Positions 9,995 through 17,100 of a stretch of DNA of 44,632 nt are shown here, piece by piece. Numbering within the stretch: position 1 is the stretch's first letter; every line of letters begins with the position of its first letter. The stretch is from Pelomyxa schiedti (Eukaryota > Protista > Evosea). The notes under the pieces are model-generated. The model was given only the letters and a program-made list of their open reading frames with translations, had not been told where the DNA came from and made no database searches. The stretch covers positions 1-44,632 of the forward strand of contig JAHLWZ010000928.1 in NCBI GenBank assembly GCA_020536535.1, in the 5' to 3' direction. A program made the translations under genes and the position numbers.

Positions 9995-12093
9995 ATGGAC
10001 GAAACGGCACAAGGTGCCGTTGCAGCTCCCACAATGTCTTCTAACTGCACCCCCGCAACGGCAATGATAAGTTGCAGCTCTCATCCTTTGACGGGAGCTG
10101 TGGGACTCGACGTGGGTGTGTCGGTTGTTGGTCACGGCGATCTGTCGGCCAATGTCGGTGCGGCTGGCATCCCACCATCCAGTCTCGATGCGTTCCAGTC
10201 ATTCTCTGCCCACATCAAGAGCATCGTCGCAGTGCGCACCAGCCTACTTTTTTCTGTGGTGTCTGTTTTGGTCTGGGGGAAACGAATTATGGGGCAACTA
10301 ACGCACTAGACCAGGGACGTGAGATTCCCTGTGTTGACTATCTCAAGTTGCAAGTTGCTCTTGCCAATTTGTGGATGAAACTTTACCCCAACAATTGGGA
10401 ATACATTGATGATGTTATGAAGAATACTGCGGAGTTCCTTGCAGCCGTCAAGGACCCGTTCGTGCCTCATTCCATCCGCCTTTCCACCAAGTTTTCGTTT
10501 TCAGGCAAGAATTCCAACAGGAGCTGTGTGTGAATAAGATCACCAAATTGCTTTCTCTCCCAGTTGCCACATGTCGTGATATTCGGCAGGTAATTTTATC
10601 TCCTAAAAAAACCCTAAAGGCGTGATGAATGTTGTATGATTTCAACAATGAAAGGTCCTTGGACTTCAACATTTCAATGCTGTTTGTTCACACTTGCAAT
10701 TTGAACAACGCAAAGCCATTCATGTCAGCGTGCTTCGTGCTGTGCTGAGGTCATCAACGTGCATCATTAGAACAACTCAACAAGTTGGTACCTTACTGTC
10801 ATTTATCCCAACTCTTCTGATGAGTGACCCGAATGTTGACAATGAATCACACAACAAGGTTTTTAATTGCCCCTGTGAGTTGCCTTTGTTCATTTCTTCT
10901 CAAAAAGGAGCTCTTTTACGAGGAACAAAATCTTGTGGCAGCAACAATTCACATGTTTCAAAATGATGACCCAGAGATCCTTCTTGGCGTATGAACCCTA
11001 CAGGGAATTTATTCTTAAGGTTCCGCAAGATGTATCTCTGTGCACGAAAACTCTTTGGCCAATGGGACTCTGGACGATTTTCCTTCACTCTCCCACCCCT
11101 CATTTTCTCTGTTTTCAATATGCTTACCACTTTGAAGCAGACAAATGAGGTACGTAATGTAACACAGTGGAACCCATTAAATCAGCTCCACACAGGAGAG
11201 TTTCCAGAAGCTGCACAGGCGGCTGTTTGATTTTGAGAATCAAACGATCAAGGAACTCGGCACAAGGGGTTTTGTTGAACTTGCCCTCAAATTAAACTTG
11301 CAGGGGGCCCAAGTTGCTGCTGTGTGTAAGCAGGAGGCTTGTGTTTATGAATTCTGTTGCCAAGTATCTTTTCGCGAAGCCTTTTAGAGGGATTTTTGCA
11401 AGAGAACAAACTGAGCATCAATAGGCTTTCATTCTCTATGAGGAGGAGGTTACCAACAGTTCACAGCAAATAAAATTCGTTACACTTTTTGTCGGAACCT
11501 TGCACTCGATCCAATTTGAGCCAGAAAACAAGGAGATCCTTGCAGCCAAGGTCAATTTTACCCTCCCATGATAGCTGCTGTGCATTAACCGGCGTTTTCA
11601 CCTCAACAGATGGCTAGGTATTCCCTGAAGCTTCTTAAGAAACGCGATCAAGTCAGTGCGCTTTGCATTGTGTCACATCTCTTTGGGGGCAAAAACCAAA
11701 CAGATGGAGAAAACCGAACTGTTGAATGTCTCCAGAAGGCGCTTAGGATTGCTGATTCTCTGCCGGCAAGTTTGGAACTCCCAAAACACAACAAAACGCA
11801 CCACACAGACACTAACATCCCAAAAATAGCCGATGATGAACACGCCACTTCAAGTGGAGATTCTGAACTGGTACATGTACTTCTTCAAGAAGCACCATGA
11901 TTTAGTACCAGATCTCATTCAGAGGGTGAATGGGCTGATTGGTCTCATCAGTGCCACCATCACAACGCTCGAGCCAGATATCGCTGATTGTGCCGAGATT
12001 CAAACCACAATCAAGTTCTTCCAGAACACACTGGCATCAATAAAGCTGACGACACAGAGTTACTCAGGGGACTACACAATACACATCCCATAA
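9995..12093 (+). CDS. VPS35: Vps35 (retromer) homologue, C-terminal ~60% only; multi-exon
   Basis: Colinear Vps35 blocks: GIPPSSLDAFQSFS..., LKLQVALANLWMKLYPNNWEYIDDVM, ARKLFGQWDSGRFSFTLPPLIF, AFILYEEEVTNS, SLKLLKKRDQVSALCIVSHLF...RTVECLQKALRIAD, VEILNWYMYFF...IKFFQNTLASIK. Confidence 0.85.
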
Positions 12094-12699
12094 CTCGTTC
12101 CAAGGCCAATTACCACAAGTAAATTTGGTTCCAAGAGAACTTTGACAACAAACTTTTTTTGGAACAAGTGTTTTGGTAGGCGACTAAAAGCGGAAAGTCT
12201 AGACACCACGATTAAGAAAACAAGCTGGGAATTAGCATTTTGGAGCTAATGGAGTCCAATTGAGGTTCACATTGCTGAAAGATACTTCCAGTTGCCTGCT
12301 GAGAGTGGGGGTGGTCTGCCAGCAGTGTGGCTTTCTGTTTGTCAGCTGCTTTAGCTGCAACAGAACTCTGTGCCTCTTGGGTGGAGGGCCTCCTCTGTGG
12401 TGGAGAACTAGTGCAAGCTGTTGAATTTCACTGGCCCCCAACCAGACGGACCCTACTGTACTGTTGGCAACACTTTGCTTTACCCCTGATGATCTGACTT
12501 ATATCTGTAACAAGTGAATTGTGGGTGGTCACAGGATGCACTGTGACAGAAAGAACAGTGTTCAACAATGTACTCCCCTTATTTACTTGGAGATAGGCAC
12601 CAGAATAGCTCTAACCAAGGAGGATTGGTTCATTGGGTCAAAAGGGAAGCTCCCTGTCACAAACAGGTTAAATTCTTTTTCTCTGCTATCAGAGCATAC

Positions 12700-13829
12700 T
12701 CCATGGCGTTGGGCACCCAGCACAAGGCGGCGGACTATAATTACTAATACTATCACGAAGCACAATACGGAAACAAGCAGTGCTGTAACGTACAACTTTG
12801 TGTGGAGCTGGCAGTTAAATCAGGAATGTAAGGCATGAATTAGTAACACATACCGACTTAGTCATTGCTTCCAGAAATTGTTTCTGTGCAGATTCCTGGA
12901 GTTGAGGTTAGGTGGTAAGTCGCAGTGAGGTTTGGGTGAGAGACTACAACTTGGGTGTTGCGTGGAAGCAATACGAACAGTGCTGTACCGGTGGCAAAAC
13001 TTGTGATTGCCGTTATAGACACGAAGTACTCATCTGGATTGAGTGAAGAGGAGTCAACATCAAACGCAATCTTGTTGATGCCGTCTTTTCTATTGGACTC
13101 GACAACAGTGGTGGTTGCTTGTATCCCGACAAAGTCACGAGGATTTCCCTTCTCAGAGTATGATGATGGGTGTATCGAAAGCGTGACTGCACTGCCCACA
13201 TTGAGATTTGTAATGGCTATGATTTCGAATGCGTCACCAACGCGGTTTCTATCTCCAATTTCCAGAATCCTAATGACCGGCACCTCAACCAAGAATAGAA
13301 GCTTTGTGTACAAATCATCCACATATGGACTATTCAGAGCCCGAAGTAAAGATATCATGGCTTCTTCCGCGGTGCCATCATTAAATCCCACAAGTCCGCC
13401 TTTGGTTTCCTCGTCGAATTGCCCATTGAGTCCCGCATATTGCACGACAATCGCATATTTACCAGCGGTGGCACTCTCAGGTACCTGCAACCGAAAGCTG
13501 AAAGACACACCGTCGCCATGCATCTCAATGTTCCTCTCGACTTGGCGGTAGATGGCCCCAGGCCTGCATCTAAACACAAACACAGCAATTCTGCATGCAT
13601 GCAATGGCATTTGTTGGTGCGAATCTATCCTCCCAGTAATCCAGATACCTTGGCCCTGGACAACAGTGGGTTGGTTAATCGTCGCCGTCACGTACTCGTT
13701 TGGTCGAGCATCCACAGCCCCCGTGAAACCACGAAAAGAAGGAGGAGACCCTGCTGGACTACAGGTGACTAATAACACGGCAACCAACGCCGCGACGTGG
13801 GGCAGAAGGCCTCTGGATTTTCGCAACAT
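12700..13829 (-). CDS. Secreted/type-I membrane protein built from a Methanomicrobiales S-layer-glycoprotein-like domain, spliced to a TM exon (3' end may extend to about 12200)
   Basis: ATG 13829, signal peptide, intronless exon to 12975 containing YVTATINQPTVVQG, GKYAIVVQY, LLRALNSPYVDDLYTKLLFLVEVPVIRI, GDAFEIIAITNLNVG, GINKIAFDVDSSSLNPDEYFV and ATGTALF. Predicted introns 12974-12896 (GTATTG...CTAAC...CCAG) and 12853-12808 (GTATGT...GCCAG) keep phase 0 and join exons 12895-12854 (ESAQKQFLEAMTKS) and 12807-12700 (TM YVTALLVSVLCFVIVLVIIV followed by RR). Confidence 0.75.
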
Positions 13830-14136
13830 TTATTCTCTGAGAGATGTTTTGGGTGAGTGAATTTGGATGCTGTGAGAATGATTGGGAGCGGACTGTCTGA
13901 AGTAGGTGGCTGAGGACAATCCGTGGGACTGCTCAGGATCTGTAAGACGAACTCTTATAGATGCCGAAAGCGAACGACCGTTCTCTCTTATTTCTAATCC
14001 TTTAGGATAGTTCTAAACGGTGTGTATGGTGATGTCACGGCGACTGTTGAGAGAACTACAGCCAATTTGATCCAGTTTGGGTGACCCAAACTCAGCCTGA
14101 TTTAGGTCGGGGTGTGGGTTCTGAAACGGTGATCAG
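13830..14136. promoter_or_regulatory. Probable bidirectional promoter
   Basis: About 300 nt between the divergent ATGs at 13829 (-) and 14137 (+). Inferred from geometry only. Confidence 0.45.
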
Positions 14137-17100
14137 ATGTTCACCACAGTTTCGGCTGCTTCTTCTCATAACCAGGCACGAAGAACTTTTCACGAGTCTT
14201 CTCAAGTGATGGCATCCGCAACGTCAGGTGCAGCGTCAGTCATTTCAAGAGTCACTGATGTACCACCGGTGTCGCAGCCGCAACCAGGGGTGTCACTCGT
14301 ATGCGGCCCACAATTCCCTCCGAGGACGATTCCCGCGTTCAGTGCACCGCTGGGACTGGCCGTTGCAAAAGTAGTCGCCGAGAACGCCAACTCGGACTTT
14401 GTGGTGTTTGCCAACAAGAGGATGACGTTCGCAGAAACGAAACGTTGCGTGTTGTAATTGTGGGTTGTGGGTCCGTCTTTTTTTGTATTGAACCTGTGGA
14501 ACCTTGATTTCATTTTATTTGTTTGAATTGTTGACTTAATGTTCATTAGAATTGATGGACAAAATTACTGTGGCTTTGCTGGCCAAAATGGGATTATCCA
14601 AGGGGGACCCTGTAGCCACTTTTCTTCCAAATGTACCTGAGAACCCAGCTATTCTACTTGCCACCATTTGTGCTTCCCTTATTTTCTCGCCATTGAATCC
14701 TGGGTACATGGCTGAACAGGTTTCATTATATATTGCCTCCGTTGGTGTTCAGTCCCTCTCAGGTGATAGCCTATGTGAGTCGAATCAAACCAAAAATTAT
14801 TTTCGCACATAGCAGTAACGCTGGAAGGATTCGTGACGTTGTTGATCCTGTTATACCTATTGTTGTTCTAGGCACAACGCTTCCAGATGGTCCTTATGGT
14901 CTGTTATAGCTTAACTTTAATAGTTTTCTCAAGGTCCAAATGTCCTGTCATTTGATTCTCTTATTGGTAACTTGCCGCAAGTTGAGCCGGGCTTCATAAT
15001 GAAGGTGCACCAATCGGCCTCACCAAATGATGTTGTAGCTTATGCCTCAACTGGTGGTTCAACCTCCGGTCCTAAGGTATGTCATCGTACAAAGGATATC
15101 TTGAAAACCTGAAATTTAGTTGTGCATCTGGACCCTGAACGTTATACGTCATTCAATTATTGTAAGCTTTCAGGGCAAGGCACGTATAATGCTGCCTCTT
15201 CCCTTCTATGCTAGTACTGGCACTTTGACGCAACTGTTCACATTTTTTTGTGGTGGGACTCTTGTTTGCACGGAGACATTCGACTTGCACGAATGGCTTG
15301 AACTAGCATCACGGGAGCATTGCAATTCACTGACTGTAGCCCCAAGCCTTCTCCTAGAACTTCTCGCAGGAGATTACTCGTATGATCTCAGCAATGTGAA
15401 ATATGTGATTAGTACTGGCGCCTCTGCTTCTCAAGACATGCTTTCTCGTGCCCAAAAGAAATTCGATCTTGCCGCAGCTTTCTCTGTCTACGGAATGACA
15501 GAAACAGCTGGCAGAGTAGCTCGCTCAATTGTGCCATTCCAAGTTTGGCCATATATGAAAGTAAGAATTGCTGACACAACAAGTGGGACTGTTGTTGCCA
15601 CTGGCTTGTCTGGAGAGATACAAGTGCAAGGGCCAACTGTATTTGCAGGTTATCTCGGGGAACCAGAATTAACTGCAAGGGCTTTTACAAGTGATGGGTG
15701 GCTAAAGACTGGTGATATAGGCCACTTTGATGATAAGATGTTTTTGCACATCACAGGAAGAATCAAGGAAATGATCAACAGAGGTGGAATGAAAGTATGG
15801 CCTGCTGGTATATGAGCCTCTTTCTCAAATCGAAATTTATTAACCTTCCATTTCTGAAAAGATCTTGAAGCCGTGTTGGCTACACATCCAGGCATACAAG
15901 AAGCTGCAGTTATTGGGATCCCTGATATCCTCATGGGGGAATCTGTCGTTGCATTTGTCATTCGCAACCCTCTCCATACCCCTCCTGTGACCGTGCATGA
16001 TGTTAGAAACTTTATGGCGGCACAAGTTGTTGCGTTCTGTGTGCCACAGTACGTGTTCTTTGTTGAATCTTTTGAAAGAAACTCGGCTGGGAAAACCTAC
16101 AAACCAGCCCTTTGTTCCATGGCACCGAAGCTGGTGGAGGACTACTGGACTAGCGTCAACGTGGCACCTGACCTGACACCTTCTGAGTGATCACATCCTC
16201 TACTGTTTGCCAGTTTTAACTTATCCTCATAGACCACTCGCCAAGGAAATAGCCAATATTTGGCACCTTGGAATAGGGATACCTGTTCATGCAATTAGTA
16301 TTGATAGCAACTTTTTTGAGCTGGGAGGGAACAGTATAGTGGCAGGGAGGACACATGCCGTTATACGTAAGGAGTTTCCTGAGACCCCTGGGAACATACT
16401 TGTTCTATGTCCCACGATTAGGCAAATTATGAGGTTTGGGAATCAGTTCATTACTGGTAAATAACCTTGAATCCTCAGGTACCTCGAATCAAAGGACACA
16501 AGTGGAGATAATACTAACTGGACAGTAGAATCTGCTCTTGAAACAACTACTGTAGCCGCTACTTTACCCCCACCAGCCCCTCCAGTGTCAACAACTTCAC
16601 GTGTATTTCTTACGGGATCGAATGGCTTCCTTGGCGTGCATGTTCTTCATGCTATTCTCTCTTACATGCCCAACGTAAGAGTAGTATGTGGGATCAGGGC
16701 TGCCAACAAAGGGGAAGCATATCATAAATTGGAGAGTGCCTTTTCTCTCAACAAATCTCTGGATCCATCACTTTTATCACGTGTGGAGGTTATTGTAATT
16801 GACTTGTCCCTCCCATTACTGGGGCTCACACCAGAAGAGCTTGGGACACTCTCCAATAGTATTGATGGTGTGTTCCATTGCGCAGCAGCAGTCTCATGGG
16901 TCACACCGTACCGAGTTTTATCAAGACATAATATCTTCGGAACAAAGCAGGTTGCATTACGCAACCAATATAGATTAATCTAATTCATTGCGCAGATCCT
17001 CTATCTGGCCAGCCTATCATCTAAAGGTCCACTTCCAGTCCATTTCGTTAGTACCTATGAGGTGCGTCTTGATCACGATGAGAATGCATCTCTTGGGGAG

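Follow-up and report, generated by a model that had tools for sequence, protein, structure and literature searches.

The gene Pelo_14302 of the amoeba Pelomyxa schiedti lies on the minus strand of contig JAHLWZ010000928.1 (C928), in a 52.4 Mb assembly of 5337 contigs (GCA_020536535.1); the window analysed here is the whole stretch of 44,632 nucleotides (nt), positions 1 to 44,632 of that contig. Its product is already present in GenBank as the hypothetical protein Pelo_14302 (KAH3744296.1, P0001 below), 350 amino acids (aa) in length, which is identical, piece by piece, to the translations of the four minus-strand exons collected in Table 1. Pelo_14302 is a real, expressed and spliced nuclear gene. 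Its long first exon is, by sequence comparison, homologous to part of the surface layer (S-layer) glycoproteins of methanogens, and its short last exons encode a predicted transmembrane (TM) anchor, a tail which on balance seems to have arisen in the amoeba lineage.

Table 1. Features of Pelo_14302 and their positions in the window (AF2, AlphaFold2 model; HMM, hidden Markov model; ORF, open reading frame; Ig, immunoglobulin; UTR, untranslated region; X1 and X2, RNA-seq runs)
Feature	Positions	Strand	Description	Evidence
Exon 1	13829-12951	-	879 nt, intron-free, residues 1-293; predicted signal peptide, two S-layer Ig-like domains, connector LPRNTQ	ORF and identity with P0001; X1 record 3 over 12950-13510
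Predicted signal peptide	13829-13752	-	approximately residues 1-26: basic MLRKSRG, hydrophobic run, LVTC/SPAG	
First beta-sandwich domain	13694-13437	-	residues 46-131; corresponds to D5 of Methanomicrobiales S-layer proteins	AF2, HMM
Helix and second beta-sandwich domain	13373-12969	-	residues 153-287, D6-like; last strand 280-287 (TGTALFVL)	
GTATTG, donor proposed earlier	12974-12969	-	within the codons of the last beta-strand	unused in RNA contigs and GenBank model
Intron A	12950-12896	-	55 nt, GTTGTA...CTAAC...CCAG, phase 0	
Exon 2	12895-12854	-	42 nt, ESAQKQFLEAMTKS, start of stalk helix	AF2 helix from residue 297
Intron B	12853-12808	-	46 nt, GTATGT...CCAG, phase 0	joint 12807/12854 in X1 and X3
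Exon 3	12807-12700	-	108 nt, LHTKLYVTALLVSVLCFVIVLVIIVRRLVLGAQRHG; LHTK, predicted TM helix LYVTALLVSVLCFVIVLVIIV (12795-12733), RR (12732-12727), LVLGAQRHG	P0001 residues 308-343
Intron C	12699-12654	-	46 nt, GTATGC...CAG, phase 0	X1 joint 12652/12699 (cut +1); RHG followed by GASLLTQ in P0001
Exon 4, coding part	12653-12630	-	GASLLTQ (12653-12633) and stop TGA (12632-12630)	
Probable 3' UTR	12629-12139	-	approximately 490 nt, poly(A) site near 12139	X2 record 6, X1 record 2

The exon structure can be followed in contigs of three single-cell RNA-seq runs (X1 to X3) which, together with those of one DNA run (X4), were aligned to positions 11400-15400; the RNA evidence is of contigs rather than raw reads, and contigs drop rare variants. 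Record 3 of X1 aligns to four separate stretches (approximately 12602-12652, 12699-12807, 12854-12878 and 12950-13510). Two of its joints, 12652/12699 and 12807/12854, each skip 46 nt and are bounded by CT..AC on the plus strand or, in minus-strand terms, by GT..AG. The two sides of the third joint are separated by 19 letters, of which 16 are those of plus-strand 12879-12894; the letter that follows these is compatible with 12895 as well as with 12950. The joint is therefore read as exon 2 (12854-12895) joined to 12951, such that intron A spans 12950-12896. Hence the intron A joint (12951/12895) carries one ambiguous base in X1, and P0001 agrees with it, reading NTQ and then ESAQ. X1 also has three extra letters (GCT, plus strand, between 12878 and 12879), which are in frame and add one Ala (QKQ-A-FLE); these have no counterpart in the X3 contig, the genome or the GenBank protein, and probably mark an in-frame allele. 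All three introns are thus GT..AG on the minus strand with their exon-exon junctions present in RNA contigs, and each contains a YTRAY motif 11-18 nt upstream of its AG.

Further downstream, record 6 of X2 spans 12139-12568, with 24 loose T ahead of 12139, the poly(A) tail of a minus-strand transcript, while record 2 of X1 covers 12196-12566. The continuity of this 3' UTR with the coding part is deduced rather than read off directly, since no single contig bridges 12568 to 12602. At their other ends, the RNA contigs stop at 13510 and 13033 in letters of the template-switch oligo.

Much of this structure had been anticipated in an earlier account of the region made from its letters only (the sequence-only reading), the observations of which are partly confirmed and the interpretation partly supported. 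The elements that it named are all where it had placed them, including GTATTG at 12974, directly after ...GTALF, and the 46-nt GTATGT...CCAG intron. Its acceptor at 12896 is present in X1, with CTAAC 12 nt before CCAG; its second intron (12853-12808) is spliced in contigs of both X1 and X3; the donor that it marked at 12699 opens a third intron, 12699-12654, in X1; and the added ESAQKQFLEAMTKS, TM helix and RR are encoded as it described. The minus-strand ORF without splicing (ATG 13829, 323 codons) does stop at 12858, in TAA 12860-12858. What did not survive is the first donor. GTATTG at 12974 is unused, both the RNA contig and the GenBank protein employing GTTGTA at 12950, 24 nt downstream, and intron A is therefore 55 nt long and not 79 nt. 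The downstream donor adds eight residues (VLLPRNTQ) to exon 1, the C-terminal end of which is ...GTALFVLLPRNTQ, and across the junction P0001 has GTALFVLLPRNTQESAQ, not GTALFESAQ. Neither is the splice exactly at the edge of the domain, as had been claimed, in that archaeal similarity ends at L288 and not at F285, with the junction approximately six residues after the last strand.

The distribution of the introns is uneven. None interrupts the first 879 nt of the 1053-base coding sequence, all three being placed from base 879 onwards; the mean number of introns per gene in P. schiedti is 7.43 (PMC8887013), and if introns are assumed to be gained uniformly, by our own arithmetic the chance that all three should fall within the last 174 nt is ~0.005. 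The G+C content of third codon positions (GC3) in exon 1 is 0.50, as against 0.37-0.48 in host ORFs. This is close to the host values, from which it follows that the transfer was not recent, or that the gene was quickly reshaped.

The archaeal affinity of exon 1 is evident from the profile NF041431 (MEMAR_RS02690 S-layer glycoprotein), which matches residues 45-311 of the unspliced ORF over profile positions 508-782 of 819 with an E-value of 7e-39, in keeping with the earlier view that the domain is archaeal. The score, 133.9 bits, lies below the curated cut-off of 600, such that the amoeba protein is not a member of the family as a whole protein. An exhaustive protein search gave 274 matches, the nearest of which, besides the protein itself, are 31-47% identical, and a genome scan gave 80 loci, nearly all from Methanoregula or Methanoregulaceae, with 44-52% identity over residues 154-288. 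An HMM of the archaeal homologues matches residues 45-142 and scores the second domain at 122.8 bits. The AF2 model (mean predicted local distance difference test, pLDDT, 80) contains beta-sandwiches at 46-131 and 173-287 followed by a long helix at 297-342, with the strands of 46-131 at pLDDT 80-94; its top solved match in Foldseek is the S-layer protein of Haloferax volcanii (7ptp_A, E 6.5e-10, TM-score normalised to the query 0.45). The similarity comes to an end at L288, where tblastn matches of P0001 residues 150-350 stop (residue 139 of that query) and where the HMM alignment of exon 1 stops as well; the exon boundary (Q293) is therefore 5-6 residues past the end of the fold.

By way of comparison, the homologue from Methanospirillum hungatei has six Ig-like domains, a proline-rich spacer of ~50 aa and a PGF-CTERM (PMC11641113). 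On the basis of the sequence matches, amoeba residues 45-288 are homologous to the last two, membrane-proximal, Ig-like domains (D5-D6) of Methanoregula-type S-layer glycoproteins. Domains D1-D4, including DUF3821, are absent, only 44 residues preceding the homologous part, and a Pfam search at E up to 1 was empty save for a chance Big_3 match. The Methanomicrobiales S-layer glycoproteins (NF041431; Mhun_2263; Methanoregula proteins of 800-1030 aa) share with the amoeba protein the orientation predicted for it, with domains outside and a C-terminal anchor after a spacer. Unlike them, the amoeba protein holds only ~250 of the ~820 profile positions, is without the proline-rich spacer (~50 aa; mean 39 aa in relatives) and the PGF-CTERM, and is encoded in a eukaryotic host by a gene with spliceosomal introns. 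Its mature ectodomain contains no N-X-S/T sequon, the sole one (NLT) occurring in the read-through of intron A. Among the scanned loci, two are on short contigs in Omnitrophota and Cryosericum bins (L018, JALOBQ010000131.1, and L062, DAONFE010000099.1); each carries a Methanoregula-type S-layer protein with PGF-CTERM, nested among Methanoregula, and they are probably mis-binned archaeal contigs.

The domains are preceded, in the same exon, by a putative signal peptide, with a Kyte-Doolittle 19-residue peak of 1.98 at residues 8-26 and a basic n-region before it; residues 1-36 have pLDDT below 50. An archaeal origin of this peptide was considered and set aside, in that its similarity to archaeal N-termini is no better than that of shuffles (p 0.89). 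The LVTC followed by SPAGSPPS at its end resembles a prokaryotic lipobox with a tether of the flexible kind, a feature of P0100, P0127 and P0150 among the short archaeal forms; a common origin is not supported by sequence similarity.

At the other end of the fold the amoeba and archaeal proteins part company. The sequence-only reading had stated that the archaeal relatives end in a Thr/Pro linker and a PGF-CTERM, and this is indeed the case: 76 of the 80 loci end in a Thr/Pro spacer (mean 39 aa) and PGF-CTERM, the other four being cut off or frameshifted, and TIGR04126, the PGF-CTERM profile, matches two archaeal tails at E 1e-7 and 8e-11. According to the studies cited in PMC11641113 (Haft 2012, Abdul Halim 2015), the PGF-CTERM is cleaved and replaced by a lipid through archaeosortase. 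As that reading also held, the amoeba tail has no such signal. At E up to 10, TIGR04126 matches neither exon 3 nor P0001 residues 280-350, nor does it match the read-through peptide, and the archaeosortase profile TIGR04125 has no match in the 52-Mb assembly, which is incomplete, the control genomes of Haloferax and Methanosarcina being positive. The archaeosortase route is impossible here, and the TM helix would therefore do the anchoring.

This helix is a 21-residue hydrophobic run in exon 3, LYVTALLVSVLCFVIVLVIIV, with a Kyte-Doolittle 19-residue mean of 3.35, followed by RR...R.H; residues 321-340 are modelled by AF2 as helix with pLDDT 87-93. A single hydrophobic helix of ~20 residues with positive charges on the predicted cytosolic side is the arrangement of a type I single-pass membrane protein, and the protein would thus sit in a membrane with its domains facing the lumen or the outside. 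There is a likeness to the PGF-CTERM/archaeosortase A system (TIGR04126, TIGR04125; Haloferax volcanii, PDB 7ptp), where a C-terminal hydrophobic helix is also followed by Arg-Arg. In contrast, the amoeba tail has 16 residues after the helix where the archaeal one has one to three, and its helix must stay in the membrane as a span, whereas the archaeal one is cut off and exchanged for a lipid. Two candidate relics were sought and rejected. An HMM of 68 archaeal tails, run over three minus-strand frames of 12400-12990, found no PGF-CTERM relic, the best score being 3.5 bits; exon 3 itself scores -0.8 bits, 371 of 500 core shuffles score as high or higher, and the spliced tail adds only 2.9 bits to the full-length family HMM score. 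Reading on through intron A in frame 0 did not reveal a remnant of the Thr/Pro spacer either: the composition score had a p of 0.08-0.10, other introns equalled it in some frame, and the read-through added only 5.4 bits to the HMM score.

Intron A has a further aspect. Record 10 of X3 has the joint 12807/12854 and yet is unbroken over 12854-13033, and therefore represents RNA in which intron A is retained and intron B has been spliced out. With intron A retained the frame runs into TAA 12860-12858, a stop that precedes the next junction by 5 nt and the final one by 113 nt, leaving a reading frame without the anchor. The sequence-only reading had raised possible secreted and anchored isoforms on this basis; the intron-A-retaining RNA that it implies does exist, but it may be unfinished or degraded RNA rather than the source of a secreted protein. 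Removal of intron A is the switch that places the anchor in frame, and the product of a retained form, were it translated, would be anchor-less. The larger proposal, that the host makes anchored and soluble forms, decided by a 55-nt intron, which interact with the S-layer lattice of the symbiont or with the assembly of that lattice, for instance where host membranes touch the symbionts, is speculative and in our view improbable. If true, the two-form S-layer module would be a tool of the host to recognise or control its archaeal symbiont.

The symbiont in question is Ca. Methanoregula pelomyxae, an obligate methanogen symbiont that lives in P. schiedti cells (PMC10579272). As a candidate for the closest relative it does not stand, since its S-layer protein (CP121470.1) is 42-44% identical to the amoeba protein and those of other Methanoregula up to 52%. 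The symbiont genome (loci L087, L090 and L092) encodes a PGF-anchored S-layer protein of 944 aa together with two short paralogues, of which the 399-aa ORF has a plain TM tail and the 293-aa ORF stops where the domain does.

Indeed, short paralogues are carried by Methanoregula and its relatives, and consist of a signal peptide and the same two domains followed by a plain TM anchor, a lipobox or no anchor at all; it follows that a PGF-CTERM may never have been in the donor of the amoeba gene. These forms (P0029; MCX6683032.1 from Methanoregula sp.; P0075; P0159; P0100) resemble the amoeba protein in size (290-400 aa) and in order (signal peptide, D5-D6, spacer), and several also share a plain TM helix with basic residues. 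They differ from it in being uninterrupted prokaryotic ORFs with Thr/Pro/Ser-rich spacers, only 29-37% identical to it, and it groups with none of them with support. Word-based protein searches added no closer short forms. P0029, a 323-aa protein on a compact metagenome contig of 1778 nt, gives an alignment with P0001 that begins at residue 46 and takes in the TM helix. P0100 ends in FFVLLPKNSENSSH where the amoeba protein has LFVLLPRNTQ and, beyond the junction, ESAQ; the BLASTP alignment, at 29% identity, reaches both ends.

Four trees were built, in which the amoeba branch measures 2.7 changes per site. The careful tree places the amoeba protein in a polytomy, from which the type of donor does not follow, and excludes it from just two groups, the clade of P0100 (96/92) and that of the Methanoregula short-TM forms (100/100). 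Reading the donor type from the trees was given up, the quick trees placing the amoeba protein with differing long-branch partners. By path and by identity, the rows nearest to it are PGF-anchored S-layer proteins, at 43% over 227 columns.

Taken together, we regard it as fairly probable that Pelo_14302 is an expressed gene for a type I membrane protein with an archaeal-like exon 1 and a tail that arose in the amoeba lineage. In this account a signal peptide and two Ig-like domains of Methanoregula type would be encoded by the single long intron-free exon, and three phase-0 introns (55, 46 and 46 nt) would link it to mini-exons for a helical stalk, the 21-residue TM segment with its RR stop-transfer, and a 16-residue cytosolic end. 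The signal peptide would direct entry into the endoplasmic reticulum, so that the S-layer domains would come to face the lumen or the exterior; transfer would be halted by the exon 3 helix, such that the 16-residue basic end stays in the cytosol. The tail would then derive from a 3' extension into host or formerly non-coding sequence and would not have come with the archaeal gene. The graft of host exons put forward in the sequence-only reading is a different matter, as nothing positive speaks for it: the tail exons are single-copy in the assembly, and the putative signal peptide is encoded in the domain's own exon. Several points weigh against the favoured account as a whole. When the 52-Mb assembly was searched with DNA and protein for a host source or a further copy of the tail exons, the locus itself was the sole match, and no donor for any 'grafting' is therefore known. 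The membrane location is a prediction, and as positions 13511-13829 lie outside the RNA contigs, the start codon and the signal peptide are those of the ORF and the GenBank model. In its predicted layout of signal peptide, two domains, spacer, TM helix and basic residues, the protein matches the archaeal short paralogues exactly. Moreover, the P0029 tail is the best of 177 tails against that of the amoeba (Smith-Waterman score 44, the next being 35; zone-shuffle p 0.025), with 10 of 21 BLASTP identities at E 4e-4 in a single comparison, and an approximately unbiased (AU) test does not reject a clade of the amoeba protein and P0029 (p 0.685).

These last points are the substance of a different account, in which a short archaeal paralogue like P0029, already equipped with a signal peptide, the two domains, a Ser/Thr spacer and a plain TM helix with basic residues, supplied the whole frame and its tail, and the three introns came later in the amoeba, either by insertion or by conversion of parts of the spacer; there would have been neither a graft nor a PGF-CTERM to replace. 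We think this unlikely. Short forms do exist in Methanoregula, the endosymbiont included (ORFs of 293-414 aa; MCX6683032.1), the P0029 alignment continues through the TM helix, the tree constrained to the clade that the AU test permits is 13.5 log-likelihood units better than the quick free tree, and transfer of a complete gene would require fewer events than that of a fragment with two fusions. Set against this, the tail similarity is weak, its p of 0.025 being that before correction for 177 comparisons, and is of a kind common among TM helices; the amoeba protein and P0029 are both on long branches (2.7 and 1.9), the former within the polytomy of the careful tree; the Methanoregula short-TM clade excludes it at 100/100; all three introns are clustered at or after base 879; and the frame-0 read-through shows no relic of the Thr/Pro spacer. 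Less probable again is a donor that ended at the domain edge with no C-terminal anchor, whether of the lipobox type of P0100 or one of the forms ending ...FNLE, to which the tail was a pure addition and in which no anchor was replaced. A donor of this kind would likewise make the tail new. Such forms are available, 14 of 179 relatives ending within a few residues of the domain, and the resemblance of the P0100 end, FFVLLPKNSENSSH, to that of amoeba exon 1, the lipobox-like LVTC then SPAG of the amoeba signal peptide, and a quick 46-row tree that groups the amoeba protein with P0100, P0127 and P0150 (Shimodaira-Hasegawa-like approximate likelihood ratio test, SH-aLRT, 88) would all fit. However, the careful tree has those three in the 96/92 clade without the amoeba protein, P0100 is only 29% identical, the nearest rows are PGF-anchored proteins, and the VLLP.N match is a post-hoc one to a single sequence.

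Two further accounts can be given little credence. Direct joining of GTALF to ESAQ from the donor at 12974, exactly as the sequence-only reading had it, is very improbable; GTATTG is in phase 0 and would keep the frame, but the sole RNA contig across intron A uses 12950, the GenBank protein contains VLLPRNTQ, and the cut would remove part of the last beta-strand, residues 280-287. As contigs drop rare variants, this donor may still serve a minor isoform. It is scarcely credible that the locus stems from archaeal contamination or a chimeric assembly, or that the gene is a dead pseudogene. The presence of Ca. Methanoregula pelomyxae in the same cells (PMC10579272) and the very long amoeba branch might suggest as much. 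Against these readings, the RNA has three spliceosomal introns and a poly(A) end, the depth of DNA contigs is 50 across the gene as compared with 53 and 71 on its two flanks, both flanking genes have RNA-supported spliceosomal introns, identity to the symbiont protein is just 42-44%, GC3 is near that of host ORFs, and the frame is open across 350 codons.

Gene transfer from archaea to eukaryotes is rare. Pelo_14302 illustrates how a surface module of a prokaryote can come into use in a eukaryote, the sortase-type lipid anchor being absent and a plain membrane helix, reached only by splicing, serving in its place. The exon structure was already known from the GenBank hypothetical protein, while neither PMC8887013 nor PMC10579272 mentions its archaeal S-layer character or the altered anchor, and a search of a literature library found no paper linking Pelomyxa with an S-layer protein. 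As a kind of case, Pelo_14302 joins the prokaryotic genes that have acquired introns and an anchor compatible with a eukaryote, the noteworthy part being its source, an envelope module of the symbiont's genus. Other prokaryote-derived genes of Archamoebae, such as the NIF Fe-S system (PMC8887013), are likewise nuclear, with introns and eukaryote-compatible targeting. Pelo_14302 differs from these in that its source is an archaeal cell-envelope protein and not a metabolic enzyme, and in that its nearest relatives are in the genus of the host's obligate methanogen symbiont. In other words, the captured piece is a cell-envelope part of the kind of methanogen on which the amoeba depends (PMC10579272), and the gene offers a concrete, testable protein for the question of how a protist host handles archaeal endosymbionts.

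Some minor features of the locus may be added. Contig C4192 (L002, 640 nt) is a 95.4% identical copy, with indels, of window positions 13628-14277, that is, the 5' end of the gene and sequence upstream of it. X4 DNA contigs share variants that match it, with 1 nt omitted at 13847 and 9 nt at 13904, and C4192 looks like an unmerged second allele. Within the 3' UTR, one X4 DNA contig has an 'opposite strands' joint at 12332/12399, where no inverted repeat to account for it was found, and a variant contig has small insertions at 12385-12399. Downstream, a Vps35-like gene on the plus strand converges with Pelo_14302 on the minus strand, and RNA contigs of the Vps35-like gene end at 12082, approximately 55 nt from the poly(A) site of Pelo_14302 near 12139. 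This neighbour has an RNA-supported intron of 64 nt (11766-11829, plus strand) with GC..AG ends (GCAAGT...ATAG), a class that makes up 1.59% of introns according to the P. schiedti genome paper.

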